This document shows positions 4,060 to 35,999 of a DNA stretch of 39,292 nucleotides, in pieces; position 1 is the first letter of the stretch, and each line of letters begins with the position of its first letter. The notes beneath the pieces are model-generated. The model saw nothing but the letters and a program-made list of their open reading frames with translations. It did no database searches and was not told where the DNA came from. Source of the stretch: Octopus bimaculoides (taxonomy: Eukaryota); the NCBI RefSeq assembly GCF_001194135.2, contig NC_068995.1, positions 29,710,796 through 29,750,087 of the forward strand, written 5' to 3'. Made by a program: the position numbers and the translations under genes.

Positions 4060-5870
4060 ACAGCATAAAAAACATATGCACACAAAAACAGCAACAGTAT
4101 CGATAACAAGATTAACCCAAAATATTGGGCTGAGATGAGTTCAACTGATCAGTAATTTAATTATCAGTAACAGCTTAACATGGATGTCTTGTTAGAACAC
4201 CAAATATTGTGTTATTAATCCGAAGAGATGTTCTCATATAAGTGCTTGCTACACACATACATTATAGCAGGTGAGGATTGTCTTTTATGGACTCCTGAAG
4301 TCCCATATCACATGGTTTCAGTTTATGGGACCTCTTCAGAGGGAGGTGTCTGGTGACTGCATACCAATCAAATTTGCCACGGCATGTAGAATATCAGCAT
4401 GTTTTCAAACGCTGATGTCACAAATAGCCAGAAGACTTATTAAAAATTAATTATTAGTGACAGAAACAATATTAGCACCAAAACGTAAGGTCTAAACAAA
4501 CCAGTAGACACATCACACCAGATAGAACATGAATAGAATTGTAGTAATCTACCAAAGGTCCAAAGAATGTGAATCCGATGACAATTCGGTATCTTGTTGA
4601 TTTGAAGCTAACTGTTATAGATCGATTGAGTCCATGGTATGCAGAGCATTGATGTGCATGTGGGATAAGGCACCAGCTGCAGAATTGCTTGCACCTTTAA
4701 CATATTGTATGCTCAAAGCATACTAGGAGATGAAGTCAAGATGTAATAAATCTCTTGGAGAATATTTGTCAGACTTCAATTTCAAGGCAAAAGTTAAAGG
4801 ATTATGGTAAGTAAACACTGTAAACTGCTGTCCTTCAAGAGAGTGTCAAAAATGTTTAATGGTTAGGTAGACAGCGAAAAGTTCCTTGCTGAAAGCATTA
4901 CATCAAGTCTCGGCAGATTTAAGGCATCGAGAAAAGAAGGAAATAAGTTGCCAGGCACTTGAAACGAATTGTTGAAGAACTCTACGAACTCCAACATTGG
5001 ATGCATCAACTATTAATGAGAGCGGTGCATCAAAAGCATGGGGTGACAATAGAGTTACTCTGGATAATTTTTCTTTGATATTTTCAAATGCTTGCAGGTG
5101 AGAAGAATTTAGCTATATAGCTTCACTTTTCTTTTTACGGTTTCATAAAAGTTCGGTCAGAGGACAGACAGTCTCTGTACAATGAGGAATGAATCTACTG
5201 TAAAAATTAATCAGTCCAAGAAATTCTCGCAGTTTTCATAAGGAATGAGGAGTAGGAAAATTACAAATAGCTTCCACTTTAGATGGCAAAATACGTATGC
5301 CATCTTTATCAATAGTATGTCCAAGAAAAGTAAGGGAAGAAACACAAAAGACATTTACTGAGATTGATGTCAAAGTTGTATTGCAACAGACATGTAAAAA
5401 GCTGTTGCAGATGTTCCAAATATTCTTCTTTTGTAGAACTAGCTATCAATATATTATCAGTATAGGTGAAAACGAAATTCAAACCACAAGTGACTTCATC
5501 CATAAATTGTTGAAAGGCGCTAATGGCGTTATGTAACCCCAAAAACATTCAAATAAATTCAAATAACCCAAAAGGAGTAGTGGTAACAGTTTTAGGAATG
5601 TCCATGAGCTTGATCGGAATTTGTTTATAGGCACATGCCAAATCGAATTTTGAGAAAATCATGCAACTGTGTGAAGAGGCAGAAAAATAGTACACGTTGG
5701 GGATCGGATAATGGTCTGGCACTGTAAATGGCATTCAAACCTCTGTAATCACTGCACAGACACCAGTCTCCTGATGATTTAAATATGAGATGTAATGGAG
5801 AAGATTGATTGCAGCTGAAAGGACGAATTATACCAAGGTCTAGCATATGACAAAATTCTTCCTTGCTTCT
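4060..5870 (-). mobile_element. Degenerate Ty3/Gypsy pol relic (RT, RNase H, probable integrase start)
   Basis: MLDLGIIRP..SPLH..DYRGLN, PDHYPIP..FSKFDL..AY.QIP..TPFGLFEF, FQQFMDEV..YTDNILIAS, then RNase H-like DASNVGV..LQQ..ISFFS..ELFAVY. Many stops and frameshifts. Confidence 0.85.
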
Positions 5871-6970: not shown

Positions 6971-7337
6971 TTTACTTGTTTCATTTGCCTTGCTGGGGCA
7001 CAGCCTTGAAGGGTTTTAGTCAAACGAATCGACCCTAGGACTTATTCTATCAGTCTTTTATGCTGAACTACCAAGTTATGGGGACATAAACACACACCAC
7101 CACCAGCTGTCAAGTGGTGGTGGGGGACAAAGACACACACAAACATATATATATGTGTGTGTGTGTGCGTGCATATACATATATATATATATATACACAC
7201 ACACACGACAGGATTATTTCAGTTTCCATCCACCAAATCCACTCACAAGACTTTGGTCAGCTGGAGACTATAATAAAAGACACTTGCCCAAGGTGCCACT
7301 CAGTGGGACTGAATCCACAACCATGTGGTTGAGAAGT
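6971..7337 (-). mobile_element. tRNA-derived SINE, family A (internal CA/TA microsatellite)
   Basis: Matches the copies at 23157-23552 and 35606-35999 (gacacttgcccaagg, acttattct, tttacttgtttca motifs). Confidence 0.85.
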
Positions 7338-7786
7338 AAGCTAGAATTTAAGTATTGAGATTTGAGGAAAAGCTGATCATGATACCAATCAATCCAGTTT
7401 CATTACAATTAGTCCTGGGTATGACTTTAAACTACATCCAGTAGTGGGGCCCTGCTTCAGAACTTCCAGGATTTTGAGGAGTGTAGATCCATCCCTTAAT
7501 CACTGTTGTTCCCAGGTCTATTATGACCCAGAGTTGTAACACCTGTCAAGGTCCCTGCTATGGGTTAAATAGCATGTAGCCACCTGAGCCAGGGTACATT
7601 AAAGTAAATTATGGGATGCAGCATGGTGGGATGAACAGACAACTGTCAACGGCCAGGATCAACTAATTTAGTCAGCAAAGTACAACTATCAACTGTAGTC
7701 ATGGAATGTGCAGATGAGATATTCCTGTCAGGCAAGTTGTCTGATTCAGATTCAGACAATTAGAATAAATCGTCCTCTCTAGTTAG

Positions 7787-7898: not shown

Positions 7899-8667
7899 AA
7901 ATTAACCTTATAATAAAAATATAGATTTGATATTTAGTGCATGAAGAAGTTGCTTAACACTCAATTAAAAAAATATCAATAAATATAACAACGATCATCA
8001 ATAATAGAAAAGCAAAGTTGACATTTCAACTTTATCTTTATTTTTGTAAGAGTAGAAAAACAAAAACAGTAATTATAGAGAAGCAGAAACGACAAAGAAA
8101 ACAATGAAGGCAAGAACAATAATGGAAGTACTGGACAAAAAGTTAGGGAATCAGCATTGTGCCAATAAACGAGACACTTGGCACTTGTCAAGTGAGTTCG
8201 TCTGTTTCTAATAAGATGTTGGTGTTATCATTGTTGTTGTTGATAACTGATTGAGTAGGCCTTTAATCAAAAGCTTTCTGGCCATATCCATCCTGCATTG
8301 TTTTCAAAAATAGTGTATTTTAGGATTAGATAGTTCAGTATACTTTTCTTTCCTTTAAAATGCTAGGGTGTAATTTGTGGGAGACGAAATGTTTTCTAAT
8401 GACATTGAGAGTAAGAGAGAGAGATGGTTTGACAGTGAAGAATAATAGAGGTGTAGAGGTAATATGGAGAATTATGTCTGGTAGCAGGATCAGACATCTG
8501 CAGAAGGCTCATCATAGACATAACAGATACCAGTCTCAGAGATAACTCCATCTCACCCAAGGCTTTGCCAATAAAGTTTCAATGAGGAATTTTTTTGTTT
8601 GTTTTTGACAAAATTAACTGACCATGACGTTTTCTTCCCTTCAGTTGTAGAGAGGTTATGTGCCTCC

Positions 8668-8742
8668 GGTCATTTGAGTCTGATGAGTCACCTATTCAGC
8701 CAAGCACTTTATAGGTGTGAAACCAATGGTCACTCTATGACC
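8668..8742 (+). ncRNA. Type-I hammerhead ribozyme motif (HHR3) with canonical GUC site
   Basis: GGUCAU-UU-GAGU-CUGAUGA-GU-CACCUAU(15 nt)AUAGGUG-U-GAAA-CC(AAU)GG-UC-ACUC-U-AUGACC. Stem I 4+6 bp, stem II 7 bp, stem III 3 bp. Confidence 0.8.
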
Positions 8743-8874
8743 AGCCTTAACAAACAACCTCTTAAATATATTATATATCTAATATATATTCTGCTGTGGT
8801 GGACAGATCTTCTTGAGTACAGCAAGGTGTCAAATATCCTTTGTCAGATTTCAGTCTTTGATATATGTGAGTGT

Positions 8875-8878
<4 letters not shown>

Positions 8879-8957
<79 letters not shown>
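8879..8957. repeat. (AT)n microsatellite
   Basis: Pure AT dinucleotide run. Confidence 0.98.
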
Positions 8958-8961
<4 letters not shown>

Positions 8962-9114
8962 CAGCAACTTATGTATCACAATTAAAGCCAATACATCATA
9001 GAAAGCCTAATTGACAGCAGTATTCATCTTGAGATAGCATCTCTTGTAGATACACATTGTTAAAAACAAAAATATATCAACCCAAACAGAAATTGGCCAG
9101 CAGCTGTGGTGGCA

Positions 9115-10407: not shown

Positions 10408-10512
10408 ATGGCTAAGCCGATGCTAAATTCGACACCGAAATTAAAGGATTATATATTTGCCGAAAAACTTGGCAGTGGGAGTTATGCAACTGTATATAAA
10501 TCATGTAGAAAG
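10408..10512 (+). CDS. ULK3: ULK3 kinase, coding exon 1 (MAKPMLNSTPKLKDYIFAEKLGSGSYATVYKSCRK)
   Basis: ATG at 10408, Gly-rich loop GSGSYATV, donor AAG|gtaagt, phase 0. Splices in frame to 34648. Confidence 0.92.
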
Positions 10513-10739
10513 GTAAGTGTAACCGAAAATAAAAATAATTGAACTATATTGTTAATTTGAGGGTATTTTTATTGTTTTTCTTTATTTAAGATACGAAGAA
10601 AACAACATGTCCCGATTCGTCATTTATCGTCTGCTTTTAACAGCAAACAACACACCTTGACACTTTCGAGGATGGGAACATATCTTTATTTCTAATTTAG
10701 GAACAAGGTCCTAAATTTTTACTAAAAGTATAGTCGATA

Positions 10740-16319: not shown

Positions 16320-17070
16320 GTTGCTTCGATGAAGCACCTTGTCAAGACTAACTGTGAGTCTGAAATGTACACATGTAATGCAAAATCTGTCCATTATATG
16401 TTGCATATCCCCCTCTGAATGTGCCAACAAATCAGCATCATCAGCGTAAAGTCATTCTCTTACAAGTGCTTTTGAAGTCTTTGTTTTGCTCTTAAACTGA
16501 GTCAGATATAAAATGCAACCAGATGTCTGAAATCTGATTCCGATTCCCCTGTTGCAATCCTTGGAAGCATACCAAAGCAATGCAGCAAAATAAATAGAGA
16601 AAAATATAGGGCAGGAATATCTCTCTGTCTGACACCATTGTCCACTGAAAATTCATGAGATAGCTCTCCATTAAAGACTACCTGAGCTTTCATGTTTCTG
16701 TGTAGTTCCTTAAAGATGCTCACAAAATGTGTTGGGCAAACAAGTTTATACAATACAATCCACAGTGCCTCCTTGTTTACTGTGTCAAATACCGTAGTTA
16801 AATCTAGGAAGACCTGGTATAGTAGCATTTGCTTCTCTAAGCATTTCTTCTGAACCTGCCTCACAGAAAATATCATGTCCATTGTTCCTCGCTCAGGTCT
16901 GAGACCACACTTTTTCTTTGAGAATCACATGTGGACACACATTCTAGCATGGAAATTATCTTCCCAGTATGTACCAGGATAGTTATCCCTCTAGAATTAC
17001 CACACTCTGCTTTTGGGCCCTTACCCTTGTATATAGAGATTAGAATGCCATTTATACATTCCTGTGACAC
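16320..17070 (-). pseudogene. RTE/BovB-like LINE reverse transcriptase fragment
   Basis: IYKGKG..CGNSRGI, DMIFSVRQVQKK..VFLDLTTVFDTVN, NGVRQ, YADDADLLAHSE. Frameshifted. Confidence 0.88.
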
Positions 17071-19100: not shown

Positions 19101-19969
19101 AACCAAATTCTTTCCCATAAATCCCTATATACTCTGAAAGCACACCATATAAGAAGTATTTGTAAAAAATTTTGTTAAAAAGTCTCCATTTTTCTGGATT
19201 TTATGAGGCAATAAAGTCGGGGACATATACATCTATGGTAATGCCCTTTTATTTATATGATTTTTTCATTTCATGTTTATTTAATTCATTGTTTGCAATA
19301 TTCTCTCTCCCCCTCTGTCTCTCTCTCTCACACACACACGCACACATACACACACACACACTACTAAGCATACAGATGGGCTGCTGAATTGAAATCTCCA
19401 TGTTGCTTTGAGGGGAAGGTAAGACTTGACAAACTGCCTCTTCCTCTGTTGTTGGACTACTGTGATGTTTGTTTAAAAAAGAGAGATTTATGACTGATAA
19501 AGTAATGAAAGCAATATTTACTAAGCAAGTGAGCACTATTATACAAAGAAATAATGAGACGTAAAATATAAAAATTATTAGAATTAGGAATCAAATGAAA
19601 ATATTATCAAGGGGCTAGCAGAAAACCGCTTGAAGGGTGCTAGTATATATAATGTAAAATTTTGGTTACATATGGCTGTGAGATTAAATTTCTGGACTTC
19701 TGACTGCACAACCATCATCATCATTATAAGTTAAAAAACTGAATTACTTCAGTTCTTAGAAGGGCATATAACATGAATTATAAGAACATATCTAGATAAT
19801 GCTTCACAATATCCCCATACTCTAAGCTGCTGTGTTTAATTTTATATTGGTTTAACTTTGAAAATATTCATTGGTTCTTCAGTTAAAATAGGTGGTGCAG
19901 GAGGGACTATAACCGAAAGATGCCATACATTTTTATTAAACTTTAAATCATGAAAAATTATTAAATGAT

Positions 19970-20122
19970 ACAGGTGCAGGCGTGGCTATATAGTAAGAAG
20001 CTTGCTTTCCAACTACATGGCTCTGGGTTCAGTACCACTGTGTGCCACTTTGGACAAGTGCCTTCTACTATAGCCTCAGGCTGACCAAAGCATTGGGAAT
20101 GTATTTGGTAGATTCAGTCTGA
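19970..20122 (+). mobile_element. Family-A SINE, 5' half (tRNA-like head)
   Basis: tggctatatagtaagaagcttgc..gggttcagtacc (A/B-box-like) ..gacaagtgccttctactatagcc. Confidence 0.8.
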
Positions 20123-20141
20123 AAGGTCACCTTATAACTTG

Positions 20142-20988: not shown

Positions 20989-21280
20989 TGTGGTGTATGC
21001 GTGCAAGTAGAAGTAATCGACTTACCTCGTTTTCCTTCCTTTGCACGAGACTGTTCTGCAGTATCTGATCCTCGCGACTGGCCCGACCCGAAGAACACTA
21101 GAAATAGCAGCTGCTTCTCCCAACACCTAGACGATCGCTTGGCACGTCCTCTCCTCACAACAACCCCATTCAAAAAGGGCACCAAATCCCAATTGAGGCA
21201 CCCTCTGCCCTTCTTCCTCTTCTGGTCAGCTCGCCGTTCCGGTCAGCGGTCAACTCCCCAGTTGCTGACGTCATACCACA
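20989..21280 (-). repeat. 3' LTR (292 bp)
   Basis: TGTGGTGTATG...CATACCACA. Roughly 88-90% identical by eye to the other LTR. Confidence 0.92.
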
Positions 21281-21312: not shown

Positions 21313-22383
21313 CTACTCCACTTCGAAGTCCGCCATCCAACCGGGCGGGCGCCTTACGCGTCGAGATCTTCTCAAGCCAGGTGCCTTGTTTCCCTCTCTG
21401 CACTCTTCATCCGACGAAGTGGCTATCCTGTGCAGGTCCAGCACATGACGTGGAATTCCATCCACGGATACATTGTTTCTGGAATTGACTGCCGTCACCG
21501 TTCCCCTGCCCCATTGCGACATGCAGCGTGCCTTTGGCGGCTTGACCCAAACTTCCTCCCCTACTTTCACACTGGCAGGTCCCTTCTCTTCTTCGCAGAA
21601 CTCCGGCGTCTTACTGGGATGCCTCCATTCATACTTGAACACTGCTCTGTGCGGCACAGATTCTTCCGCTTGTCCGGATCAAGGAGACATCTTATACCAG
21701 AAAGCCGCTTCCAGGAGTGAAATGTGCCCCCTTTCAGCCATGGCCTTGATCGTCCGATGGTGCCTCTCAACGATTCCATTGCCGCTCGGCCTATACGCCG
21801 CTCTGAACAATCGTCGCACCTTCCACCGGTCGAGCATCTCCCCCAACGTTTCCAAATGAAACGCCACCCCATTGTCCATCAGCAATTCTTCCACAGGACC
21901 CCTCTCTAAGAATATCCCGTTCAAAATCCGGGCAATCTCATCAGCAATGCCTGTCCTCAACTCCCTCCAAATGGCCAGCCAGCCCGGCCCGCAGTCGACC
22001 ATGGTGAGATACATTCCTTGGTGGTAGTGCGTCACATCTACAGGTAGTCTCCTCCAGTTGCACTCTACTGAGAGGTTCCCTTGCTCATACCCACCCGTGG
22101 CGGGGTCAATGGACTGGCATCTGTCACAGTTCCCGCCCACTTTCTTGACGCTTCTCCTAGTGACGTCAGCATCAATCATCTTCGCACTTAACCTCTCTTC
22201 CTCGTTCATCTCTAAATACAGGGTCAGGGCGCTTCCTTCCAAGTATAGCTCCATAAGACTCACCACATCGCTTATCACTTGCAGTTTCGCCACAAGCCTG
22301 ATCTTTTGCATCCATGCCATTACATCTCCCTCGCCATTAAAAGGCCTGATCATGTCGCTGGCGATTCTATTCTTGGCTGCCAT
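21313..22383 (-). pseudogene. Gag N-terminus fused in frame to integrase; one internal stop at 21679-21681
   Basis: RPFNGEGDVMAW..LYLEG.AL.LYLEM (gag), then CDRC, VDVT/MDNG/VERHHRT with D(35)E spacing. Same-frame C-terminal domain ..VWVKPP..LRRSRRVRRPP. Confidence 0.88.
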
Positions 22384-22418: not shown

Positions 22419-22730
22419 TGTGGTGTATGCGTGCGAGTAGAAGTAATCGCCTTACCTCGGTTTTCCTTTCGTCGACTGCGACTCTGTCCTGTGGTATCCG
22501 ATCCTCGCAGCTGGCCCGACCCAAAGAACACTAGAAATAGCAGCTGCTTCTCCCAATATCTAGACGATCGCTTGGCATGTCCTCTCCTTACAACAACCCC
22601 GTTCAAAAAGGGCACGAAATCCCGATCAAGGCTCCCTCTGCCCTTCTTCCTCTTCCGGTCAGCTTGTCATTTCAGTCAGTTCACGGTTCCGGTCAGTGGT
22701 CAGCTCCCCAGTTGCTGACGTCATACCACA
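22419..22730 (-). repeat. 5' LTR (312 bp)
   Basis: Same termini as the 3' LTR, with an extra segment of about 20 bp. TGACGTCA palindrome near the outer end. Confidence 0.92.
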
Positions 22731-23156: not shown

Positions 23157-23552
23157 CTCTTTTACTTGTTTCCATCATTTTGACTGTGGCCATGGTGGAG
23201 CACCACCTTTAGTCAAGCAAATAGACCCCAGGACTTATTCTTTGCAAGCCTAGTGCTTTTTGTATTGTCTCTTTTGCCGAACCGCTAAGTTACAGGGACG
23301 TAAACACACTAGCATCAGTTGTCAAGCGATGTTAGGGGGACAAACACAGACACACAAACATACACACAAACATATATATACATATATACGACAGGCTTCT
23401 TTCAGTTTCTGTCTACCGAATCCACCCACAAAGCTTTGGTTGGCCCGAGGCTATAGTAGAAGACAATTGCCCAAGGTGTCACACAGTGGAACTGAACTTG
23501 GAACCATGTGGTTGGTAAGCAAGCTACTTATCACACAGCCACTCCTACGCTT
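23157..23552 (-). mobile_element. Family-A SINE, near full length
   Basis: tRNA-like head (ggctgtgtgataagtagcttgc..agttcagttcc), central TA/CA repeat, 3' tail. Confidence 0.88.
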
Positions 23553-24244: not shown

Positions 24245-27200
24245 ACAACATGCAGGGGTCTTCCATGGCATACATGGAGGCTATGGTTTTGGTTCCTGCA
24301 ATGAGGAGGAAACCAAGCTGCTGGAGTTCTACGATGCAAATGACCTTATGGTTTGCAATACTAACTTCAGGAAACCTGCCTGTCACCTAGTCACCTACCG
24401 TTCTGGCAGACACACTAGCCAAATTGACTACATCCTCGCGAGACAAAGGGAAAGAGAGCTGCTTATAAATGCCAAAACTTTCCCAGGCAAAGAATTTACC
24501 CCTCAACATAGATTAGTAGTTAGCGACTTCGGGATCAGGGCTAAATGGATGCCCAGAAGTAGACTAGCTTGGAGGAGAAGGGCGTGGAAGCTTAAAGATC
24601 CTGCAAATGGACAGAGATTTAAAGCTTTTTATGAGATAAGAGGATATAGCTTCACACAATGTGGAAGACAACTGGAGGTTTCTACGGGACAACCTGCTGA
24701 GGGCTACTGACCAGATCTGGAGATGGTGCAAAGTCCCCTCTCGACCCAAAATAACGTGGTGGTGGAACAATGTTGTTGACAGGGCTATTAGAGTAAAGAA
24801 ACAGGCTTGGTAGGACTGGAAGAACAGTGGTAGCAGGGAATTGTATCAGACTGCCAGAAGGGAAGCTAGGAGACTGGTTTATTTAGCCAGAGGAAAGCAG
24901 ATAAGAAAAAATTTGCCATTGTTCTGCACTGTGAGGACCAAAGACTCGAGGTATTTTGTGTTGCAAGAGAGTGTGTGAGAGAGAAACGTGATGTTTTAGG
25001 AGAGAAATGTGTTCGCATGGATGATGGTACGCTTGCACTAAACAAGGCTACAAAGAGAGAGATTTGGAGACACCACTATGAAATGTTGCTCAATAAAGAG
25101 AATGAATGGGAGAAAGAGAGTCTGCCAGATGTCGACCCAACAGAGGGACCAGCTATCCAAATTGACAGTACCATGGTAGATAAAGCAATTAAGAGTATGA
25201 AGACAGGGAATCACTGCAGAGATGCTCAAAATATCTGGCGGTGTTGGCTATAGCCTCATTACCCATATAGTTAACTAGGTGTTACAGGAAGGAGTCATAC
25301 CCAATGACTGGTGTAGCAGCACCATAATCAACTGCTACAAAGGCAAAGGTGACGCTTTAGATACAAATAATTACAGAGGTATCAAGTTGTTGGATCAGGT
25401 AATGAAGGTCATGAAGAGGGTCATAGCCCAACTAATTAGGGAGCGAATCAGCTTAGATGAGATGCAGTTTGGGTTCGTGCCAGGGAAAAGCACCATTGAT
25501 GCTATATTTCTGGTAAGACAGCTGCAGGAGAAATACCTAGCCAAAGATAAACCTCTGTACCTGNNNNNNNNNNGACAGCTGCAGGAGAAATACCTAGCCA
25601 AAGATAAACCTCTGTACCTGGCTTTCGTTGACATGGAGAAAGCCTTTGACAGGGTCCCCTGATCCCTTATCTGATGGTCAATAAGGAAACTAGTGATAGA
25701 AGAATGGTTAGTGAGAGCTGTACAGAGACGCTGCCAGTAAGGTGAGGGTTGGCAAAGAGTACAGTGAAGGATTCTGGGTAGAGGTAGGGGTCTACCAAGG
25801 TTCAGTCTTCAGCCCCCCCCTCTATTTATCATAGTCCTCCAGGCAATAACACAGGAATTCAAGACAGGATGCCCCTGGGAGCTCCTCTATGTTGATGACC
25901 TTGCTCTAATTGCTGAGTCACTATCAGAACTAGAGGAGAAGTTTCAGGTGTGGAAGCAAGGATCAGAATTGAAGGGCCTTAGAGTCAACCTAGCTAAAAC
26001 CAAAGTCCTAATAAGTAGGAAGGCAGACAAACCACAAATCCCTTAAGGTAGATGGCCCTGCTCGATCTGTAGAAAAGACGTAGGTAGAAACTCTATAAGA
26101 TGTACCCAGTGTAAGCTCTGGACACATAAGTGGTGCAGCAATATCAAAGGAAGGCTAACTGGGAAGATAGTTTTGTATGTGGTAGANNNNNNNNNNNNNN
26201 NNNNNNNNNNNNNNNNNNNNNNNNNNNNNNNNNNNNNNNNNNNNNNNNNNNNNNNNNNNNNNNNNNNNNNNNNNNNNNNNNNNNNNNNNNNNNNNNNNNN
26301 NNNNNNNNNNNNNNNNNNNNNNNNNNNNNNNNNNNNNNNNNNNNNNNNNNNNNNNNNNNNNNNNNNNNNNNNNNNNNNGACTGCTGAGGATATGCGTAAG
26401 CTTGCAAGGAATGAAGCCAGTATGCACCGCTGGATGTGTAATGTCAGTGTGCATACTCGACAGAGTGTAAGTACCTTAAAAGAAAAGTTGGACCTAAGAA
26501 GCATCAGATGTGGTGTGCAAGAGAGACGATTGCACTGGTATGGTCATGTGGCGAGAATGGATGAGAATAGCTGTGTGAAAAAGTGCCCCACCCTAGTGGT
26601 TGAGGGAACCTGTGGAAGAGGTAGACCCAGGAAGACCTGGGATGAGATGGTGAAGCATGACCTTTGAACATTAGTCCTCACTGAGGCAATGACTAGTGAC
26701 CGAGACCTTTGGAAATATGCTGTGCTTGAGAAGACACGGCAAGCTAAGTGAGACCATAACTTGTGGCCTATGCCAAGGGTGTAACCAGCCCACTTATGTG
26801 TACCTTTCCTTCATTGGACACTAAACTCTGCTTGCGAAGACCTGTTGAGGCAAGTGAAATCAAAATTGAAATCAAATTTGATGACTGGCATCCGTACTAG
26901 TGGAGCGCTAAGAACACCATCCGAGCATGATCGTTGCCAGAGCAGCTAACTGGCTTCCATGCTGGTGGCATGTAAAAAGCATCATTCAAGCGTGCCTTAC
27001 TGGCACTTGTGCCGGGGGCACGTGAAAAAATATTCGAGCGAGGTCATTGCCAGTGCCGCTGGACTGGGTCCTGTGCAGGTGGCACGTAAAAAACACCATT
27101 TGAGCATGGTCGTTGCTAGTACTGCCTGACTGGCCCTCGTGCCGGTGGCACATAAAAGCACCCACTACACTCTTGGAGTGGTTGGTGTTAGGAAGAGCAT

Positions 27201-35605: not shown

Positions 35606-35999
35606 TGTGTGGCTGCATGGTAAGAAGCTTGCTTCCCAACACATGGTTCCAGACTCAGTCCTACTGTGTGATACTATAGGTAGTGTCTTCTACTATAGCC
35701 TTGGGCCAACCAAAGCGTTGTGACTGGATTTAGTAGACAGAAACTGAAAGAAGTCTGTCATATATATATGTGTGTGTGTGTGTGTGTATCTATGTGTTTG
35801 TGTTTGTCCCAACACTGCTTGACAACTGGTGTTGGTGTATTTACATCCTTGCAACTTAGCAGTTCGACAAAAGGAACCAATAGAATAGGTTTAAAAAAAC
35901 AATGTCTTGGGATCAATCTGTTTGACTAAAATCCTTCAAGGCAGTGCTCCTGCATGGCCACAGTCTAATGATTGAAACAAGTAAAAGTATGAAAGAATA
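35606..35999 (+). mobile_element. Family-A SINE, near full length
   Basis: Head ggctgcatggtaagaagcttgcttcccaac, central microsatellite, tail acaagtaaaag. Confidence 0.88.

Follow-up and report, generated by a model that had tools for sequence, protein, structure and literature searches.

What is a hammerhead ribozyme motif doing upstream of the ULK3 gene of Octopus bimaculoides? A sequence-only reading of the window analyzed here, the whole stretch of 39,292 nucleotides at positions 29,710,796 to 29,750,087 of contig NC_068995.1, had proposed that the motif is possibly still active and that it could cut read-through or upstream-initiated transcripts on their way into ULK3. Alternatively, the motif could be a remnant of a retroelement, as hammerhead motifs of the type found in Penelope-like elements (PLEs) and retrozymes are known by the thousands in animal genomes. 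These possibilities are weighed below from the anatomy of the motif, its likeness to known hammerheads, its surroundings in the window, and its predicted folding.

Organization of the motif and the ULK3 locus

Direct reading of the sequence gives a complete type-I hammerhead motif with a full catalytic core on the plus strand at 8668-8742, in the order GGUCAUUUGAGU CUGAUGA GUCACCUAU-UCAGCCAAGCACUUU-AUAGGUGU GAAA CCAAUGGU C and, beyond the predicted cut, ACUCUAUGACC. The 5' strand of helix I (8668-8679; GGUCAU-UU-GAGU) is complementary to its 3' strand (8732-8742; ACUC-U-AUGACC), and the two form a stem of 4 bp proximal to the core, a UU/U internal loop and 6 bp distal to the core. The core box C3-A9 at 8680-8686 matches CUGAUGA exactly, and it is one of only 8 occurrences of CTGATGA across the window when both strands are counted. 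Helix II (8687-8718) is closed by the pair G8687.U8718, followed by a bulged U8688 and seven Watson-Crick pairs (8689-8695 with 8717-8711) that enclose loop 2, which has 15 nt (8696-8710). Directly 3' of helix II is an exact match to the core sequence G12 A13 A14 A15.1 (GAAA, 8719-8722), the last base of which opens helix III (8722-8730). Helix III consists of A8722-U8730, C8723-G8729 and C8724-G8728 (ACC/GGU) around the loop AAU, and its 9-mer, ACCAAUGGU, is nearly palindromic, being self-complementary at 8 of 9 positions. C8731 is C17 of the GUC site, which places the predicted scissile bond at 8731/8732.

The general features of a hammerhead core are thus all present, namely CUGAUGA, GAA at 8719-8721, the A8722-U8730 pair and C8731 at position 17 (H17, not G), and the three helices stand around the core in the correct order with 4+6 bp in helix I, 1+7 bp in helix II and 3 bp in helix III. 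The list of elements given by the sequence-only reading (CUGAUGA, GAAA, GUC, stems I to III and a 15-nt loop 2) agrees at every position with the anatomy described here.

Exon 1 of ULK3 (MAKPMLNSTPKLKDYIFAEKLGSGSYATVYKSCRK) lies at 10409-10513 on the plus strand, and was located by tblastn, with a ULK3 sequence as a lead, and by protein matches. When the translations of the three exons in the window are concatenated, they show 61-74% identity to ULK3 proteins. A protein search with these concatenated exons returned short ULK3 fragments from vertebrates, cnidarians and bivalves, and none from a cephalopod. The exon starts 1677 nt after the cut site at 8731 and on the same strand, which bears out the earlier placement of the motif in the sense orientation about 1.7 kb upstream of the ULK3 start codon. 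Intron 1 extends from 10514 to about 34640, roughly 24 kb, and is full of the remains of retroelements, with several N gaps. Among these remains are RVT_1 fragments at 16502-16882(-) and 25279-25662(+), as well as an integrase-like open reading frame (ORF) at 21679-22383(-) flanked by direct repeats (21046-21246 and 22479-22679) that are 88% identical. The window also has a dispersed repeat of about 160-170 nt, with copies at 7172-7343 and 23355-23526 and inverted copies at 19968-20125 and 35684-35803, which are 77-85% identical and contain '...CCAAGGTG(C/T)CAC(T/A)C(A/T)GTGGGA(C/T)TGAA(T/C)...'. This repeat looks like a SINE family, and one of its copies is 1.3 kb upstream of the hammerhead.

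Likeness to hammerheads of Penelope-like elements

In metazoan PLE hammerheads, helix II has 7-8 bp and helix I has 4-5 bp, loop 1 is ill-defined, an extra nucleotide between A9 and 10.1 is left unpaired on the 5' side of the base of helix II, the G10.1-C11.1 pair is highly conserved, and 15.2-16.2 and loop 3 form a palindromic sequence (Cervera & de la Pena 2014, PMC4209133). In these hammerheads the functional unit is a dimer, and self-cleavage in vitro is low. Most copies are single and dispersed and have been attributed to truncated PLEs, and some are found in pairs, on opposite strands and 100-700 bp apart (PMC4209133). A double-hammerhead arrangement has been described for the newt, axolotl and PLE motifs (PMC4209133, PMC7229834).

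The motif at 8668-8742 resembles the minimal PLE hammerheads in its type-I topology, its full catalytic core, and a short, near-palindromic helix III suited to the formation of dimers. The combination of a long helix II (6-8 bp) and a short helix I (4-5 bp) that characterizes the minimal class is seen here as 8 pairs and 4 proximal pairs, and the near-palindrome of helix III occupies the place of the palindromic 15.2-16.2/loop 3. Like many of its presumed relatives, the motif is solitary and dispersed, and the opposite strand carries another hammerhead at a distance of a few hundred bp. There are also differences. In place of the G10.1-C11.1 pair the motif has G8687.U8718, and the base left unpaired at the start of helix II, which is either a bulged U8688 following the G.U pair or an additional G8687 ahead of a U.U mismatch, sits at 10.2 in the first reading and not strictly between 9 and 10.1. 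Helix III has 3 bp and a 3-nt loop compared with 0-2 bp in the minimal motif, and loop 2 is larger than is typical for the class. No identifiable PLE terminal repeat or ORF adjoins 8668-8742. U8718 precedes G8719, which is a CpG/TpG context, and it is plausible that the G8687.U8718 pair arose from an ancestral G-C pair by CpG-to-TpG decay. Substituting "GUGAC" for "GUG-U" would give a perfect helix II of 9 bp that begins with GUCAC.

In common with 8668-8742, the canonical metazoan hammerheads of non-LTR retrozymes and satellite DNAs (newt, Schistosoma, mussel and coral; Rfam Hammerhead_1, HH9 and HH10) have type-I topology, a helix I interrupted by an internal loop, and a helix III that is palindromic but weak. 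Their origin is in retroelements, which is the probable origin of 8668-8742 as well. They differ from it in having 6 bp in helix I, 4 bp in helix II and conserved loop bases for tertiary contacts, compared with 4 and 8 bp in the motif described here. In addition, 8668-8742 scores against no Rfam hammerhead model.

A PLE-linked hammerhead in the same window and the reach of Rfam

The Rfam result needs to be read alongside that for a second hammerhead, which served as a control and is located at 302-258 on the minus strand. It was recognized by sequence reading and with a descriptor, and reads GGACCA CUGAUGA G GUCACA-AAAG-UGUGAC GAAA GAACU C followed, after the predicted cut, by UGGCC. This control has a 6-bp helix II, an extra G after A9, and a predicted cut after C263, and its helix II begins with GUCAC as does that of 8668-8742. 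About 390 nt on its 5' side is a frameshifted ORF remnant at 1218-687(-), which encodes a CX4CxxC motif followed by VVYSIRC...YIGETARSIGERVNE (GIY-YIG-like). A zinc-finger-like linker joined to a GIY-YIG endonuclease is the arrangement found in Penelope-like elements of the Neptune/Nematis type (PMC8557442). In Pfam the remnant gives a weak GIY-YIG match (E=0.027) that is below the cut-off, and the remnant may be called a PLE endonuclease, if weakly, from this match together with the CX4CxxC and ...VVYSIRC...YIGET.RS...R.NE motifs. The control hammerhead occupies the position expected of a PLE hammerhead.

None of the models of Rfam clan CL00010 (Hammerhead_1, HH9, HH10, types II and III) matched 8668-8742 at its gathering score, nor was there any match to it at E<=10 when the whole window or 201-nt and 91-nt stretches around the motif were searched. 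The control at 302-258(-) was likewise undetected by Rfam at E<=10. The Infernal scan that had been suggested as a check on the motif is therefore negative but carries little weight, since a PLE-linked hammerhead in the same window is equally missed and a negative result is what one would expect for this class. Hammerheads of the PLE type are outside the coverage of the Rfam models.

The sequence-only reading had described 8668-8742 as unrelated in sequence to the other hammerheads and as lacking a clear PLE ORF next to it. Both observations held up, as the motif has nothing in common with the other hammerheads of the window beyond the core, and neither the window ORFs nor Pfam revealed an adjacent PLE ORF. 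No reverse transcriptase or GIY-YIG ORF was found within several kb of the motif on either strand, and a 96-aa stop-free translation that spans it yielded no relatives. The flanks contain no recognizable PLE sequence and no homology to the PLE copy of the window, and when 8000-9000 was compared with the window by BLASTN only microsatellite matches were obtained. Since there is no flanking PLE ORF or sequence, and no second copy of the flanks in the window, the assignment of 8668-8742 to a family rests on architecture and context and not on homology.

Searches beyond the window were directed at the PLE endonuclease ORF and at the motif itself. Homologues of the endonuclease ORF comprised three proteins and four loci, and no hammerhead was found in the four loci. 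Three of these loci, which are short contigs from public sequencing runs (Logan SRR11869391, SRR11869394 and SRR11869384), have an endonuclease region with about 73% DNA identity to 762-1300 of the window, and these diverge 3' of the endonuclease region and are without a hammerhead. An exact-pattern scan of metagenome contigs for helix II of 8668-8742 gave 0 matches. The broader pattern CTGATGAGTCAC...GTGACGAAA gave 17 loci with mixed hammerhead types, among them minimal-type hammerheads without ORFs on three contigs (L011 61-91, L021 1885-1915(-) and L020 275-305) that have a helix II of the form GUCAC..., a single A-U pair in helix III, and palindromic tetraloops (CUAG, CGCG). These three low-GC contigs with PLE-like architecture are presumably eukaryotic DNA in the metagenome samples. 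The result for the 17 loci has no bearing on the parentage of 8668-8742.

Two hammerheads facing one microsatellite

Downstream of the motif, tract detection identified a (TA)n microsatellite at 8870-8965, a probable insertion target, which begins about 140 nt from the cut site. On its other side is a second, decayed hammerhead of the canonical type I at 9171-9099 on the minus strand. This hammerhead matches Rfam Hammerhead_HH9 with 20.2 bits, below the gathering score of 52, and the E-value of the match is 0.0058 when 151 nt are searched and 1.5 for the window as a whole. By direct reading it has CUGAUGA at 9153-9147, GAAA at 9132-9129, and AUGCGCAU at 9129-9122, the last of which is perfectly palindromic and supplies helix III and loop 3. 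Helix I of this hammerhead has 6 bp with one mismatch plus a distal 4-bp helix, and two basal pairs of helix II are broken. Two different hammerheads, 8668-8742(+) and 9171-9099(-), are thus arranged tail to tail with both pointing at the tract at 8870-8965.

For the control at 302-258(-), too, a TA-rich tract lies downstream, at 105-151. All three credible hammerheads of the window accordingly have a TA tract 30-200 nt downstream in their own orientation, and such a tract is absent for a minimal motif at 4339(-); the probability that a random position and strand in the window has a TA tract 30-200 nt downstream is 0.055. PLEs are reported to be heavily 5'-truncated and to favor microsatellites as targets (PMC8557442), and octopus genomes carry expanded PLE families (PMC13282606). 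The TA tract about 140 nt downstream of 8668-8742 fits a PLE 3' junction, and hammerheads located at TA tracts are the expected signature of the 3' ends of hammerhead-bearing retroelements that have inserted into a TA repeat.

A probable relic of a truncated retroelement

From its architecture and its surroundings, 8668-8742 is probably a solo, slightly decayed hammerhead from a 5'-truncated PLE or retrozyme that inserted at a TA microsatellite, with the proximity to ULK3 being incidental. Hammerheads of this kind are carried in the terminal repeats of PLEs and of their non-autonomous derivatives, the non-LTR retrozymes. In the parent element the proposed task of the ribozymes is the processing of multimeric or tandem transcripts, for which two ribozyme copies join into a double hammerhead by way of a longer, palindromic helix III. 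Target-primed reverse transcription would have placed a 5'-truncated copy within or next to the (TA)n tract at 8870-8965, and 8668-8742 most likely marks the 3' end of that copy. The insertion site would just happen to be 1.7 kb upstream of ULK3. The copy would now be solitary and slightly decayed, in that the partner of G10.1 is U instead of C and helix II has one unpaired base, and as a monomer it would cleave weakly, if at all. Parentage from a PLE or retrozyme, the history of the insertion and the low activity are all inferred.

Of the alternatives, the one that fares best is a close variant, in which 8668-8742 comes from a non-LTR retrozyme (a short tandem repeat expressed as circular RNA), as one monomer or as its edge, and not from the 3' end of an autonomous PLE. 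Invertebrate type-I hammerheads are mostly found in retrozyme repeats of about 200-400 bp (PMC7229834), and retrozymes are reported to derive from the terminal repeats of PLEs (bioRxiv 10.64898/2026.07.22.740005). The fact that no ORF is attached to 8668-8742 also suits a retrozyme. The window, however, contains neither a tandem repeat nor a second hammerhead on the sense strand, and where a retrozyme has head-to-tail repeats about 150-400 bp long, with a type-I hammerhead in every unit, no such array is seen at 8668-8742. Furthermore, the 8-bp helix II and the missing conserved loop nucleotides fit the minimal PLE type rather than the canonical retrozyme type, and the lack of a match to any Rfam type-I model also argues against a canonical retrozyme. 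We therefore regard a retrozyme origin as unlikely, and the difference between it and a PLE relic is one of degree within the same lineage of elements.

Could the motif have arisen by chance?

It is also conceivable that CUGAUGA, GAAA and three helices came together fortuitously in AT-rich non-coding DNA, without any ribozyme ancestry. The frequency of such motifs was estimated with our own type-I descriptor, which demands an exact CUGANGA and GAAA, a helix II closed on both sides with no more than one bulge, an A15.1-U16.1 pair, H17, and a helix I adjoining the core. Applied to the window, the descriptor gave three matches, which were 8668-8742(+), 302-258(-) and the minimal motif at 4339(-). 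For 8668-8742 the descriptor values were n1=4+6, n2=8 and n3=3, and none of 3000 dinucleotide-preserving shuffles of the window equaled the motif helix by helix. Its total of 21 pairs was reached by only 6 matches in the 3000 shuffles, which places the motif far outside what chance would give in this window (p about 0.002 or less). A lax form of the descriptor gave 0.46 matches per shuffled window, and the motif at 4339(-) (n1=3, n2=3, n3=1), being at this chance level, was dismissed.

Several observations are in keeping with a chance assembly, including the failure of any Rfam model to score 8668-8742 at E<=10, the 0.46 lax matches per shuffle, and a thermodynamic z-score for the 75-mer of only -1.5 relative to shuffled sequences. 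On the scale of a whole genome, which comprises tens of thousands of such windows, the rate of 6 in 3000 means that a few chance motifs with 21 pairs are to be expected, and for this reason the context of the motif matters. It is the context, together with the helix-by-helix comparison, that speaks against chance. Traits that were not part of the search agree with a known class (the long helix II, the unpaired base at its foot, the near-palindromic helix III and the downstream TA tract), and the same 39 kb contains two other hammerheads and a PLE endonuclease remnant, so real elements are far more frequent here than chance motifs. A fortuitous origin is accordingly very improbable.

Predicted folding and a possible role in ULK3 expression

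A quite different possibility is the one advanced by the sequence-only reading, that 8668-8742 is an exapted, active cis-acting ribozyme that cleaves upstream-initiated or read-through transcripts before ULK3 and thereby shapes expression of the gene. Gene-embedded hammerheads are found in amniotes, where HH9 and HH10 are located in introns and a discontinuous hammerhead is present in the 3' UTR of rodent Clec2 genes. The amniote hammerheads are found within transcribed regions, and different species have kept them at orthologous positions. These examples lend the idea some weight, and 8668-8742 is likewise a hammerhead in the sense orientation at a protein-coding gene, 1677 nt from the start codon. 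It differs from them in being upstream of the first coding exon.

Predicted folding gives a mixed picture. In the monomer, ViennaRNA assigns probabilities of 0.93-0.998 to 9 of the 10 pairs of helix I, the exception being the core-proximal pair U8679-A8732 (0.64), and 0.93-0.96 to the seven pairs of helix II, with the closing G8687.U8718 at 0.017. The intact core and the predicted stability of helices I and II are in favor of a working ribozyme. Another point on that side is an 8-bp complementary pair at 8650-8657 and 8756-8763 (GAGAGGUU / AACCUCUU), which flanks the hammerhead on both sides and makes up an outer helix when the 151-nt stretch 8630-8780 is folded; this helix could be due to chance or be part of the structure of the parent element. 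Against these points, the three pairs of helix III have probabilities of only 0.04-0.06 in the monomer. The minimum-energy fold of 8668-8742 pairs the GUC site with G5-A6-U7 of the core and so sequesters it, and the canonical hammerhead secondary structure is 5.3 kcal/mol above this fold. A homodimer is predicted to form an intermolecular helix III of 4+4 bp, at -44.6 kcal/mol compared with 2 x -19.5 for the monomers. An unstable helix III in the monomer and a dimer helix are the behavior that has been described for metazoan type-I and PLE hammerheads, and the same is predicted for 8668-8742. A second sense-strand copy that could serve as a dimer partner in cis was not found in the window either by the descriptor scan or by BLASTN.

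The internal loop of stem I and the 15-nt loop 2 had been put forward as a layout that allows tertiary loop contacts. This argument is weak because the canonical contacts use a geometry of 6 bp in helix I and 4 bp in helix II together with conserved loop bases, and 8668-8742 has 4 and 8 bp. Given the instability of helix III, the lack of a second sense copy and the weak case for tertiary contacts, we expect that the monomer would cleave little or not at all. The suggestion that the motif is possibly still active is further weakened by its 10.1-11.1 pair, which is G.U with a bulge, and by the poor cleavage in vitro of PLE-type hammerheads (PMC4209133). Moreover, the presence of a microsatellite and a second hammerhead relic between the motif and the ULK3 start codon is the picture of a landing site for transposons. 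What stands of the sequence-only reading is the motif, its orientation and its isolation from a PLE ORF, and what lacks support is its activity in the present form and the argument from tertiary contacts.

We consider it very unlikely that 8668-8742 is an active cis ribozyme that has been exapted at this gene, and a role in the regulation of ULK3 is unsupported, a speculation of low probability. Less likely still, by a little, is that octopods have kept a retroelement-derived hammerhead as a functional ribozyme, possibly one that dimerizes in trans, which cleaves upstream-initiated or read-through transcripts before ULK3.

Implications

If the motif did turn out to act on ULK3, it would represent a case among invertebrates in which a transposon ribozyme has been co-opted to control a gene, and it is only if it is conserved at the ULK3 locus and cleaved in vivo that 8668-8742 would be of interest in its own right. 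As a transposon relic, which is what it probably is, it matters little by itself. The two hammerheads that face a single (TA)n tract are a local illustration of microsatellite-targeted insertion of PLEs. In addition, both PLE-type examples in the window are undetected by Rfam, and annotation of cephalopod genomes with Infernal only will under-count their ribozymes.
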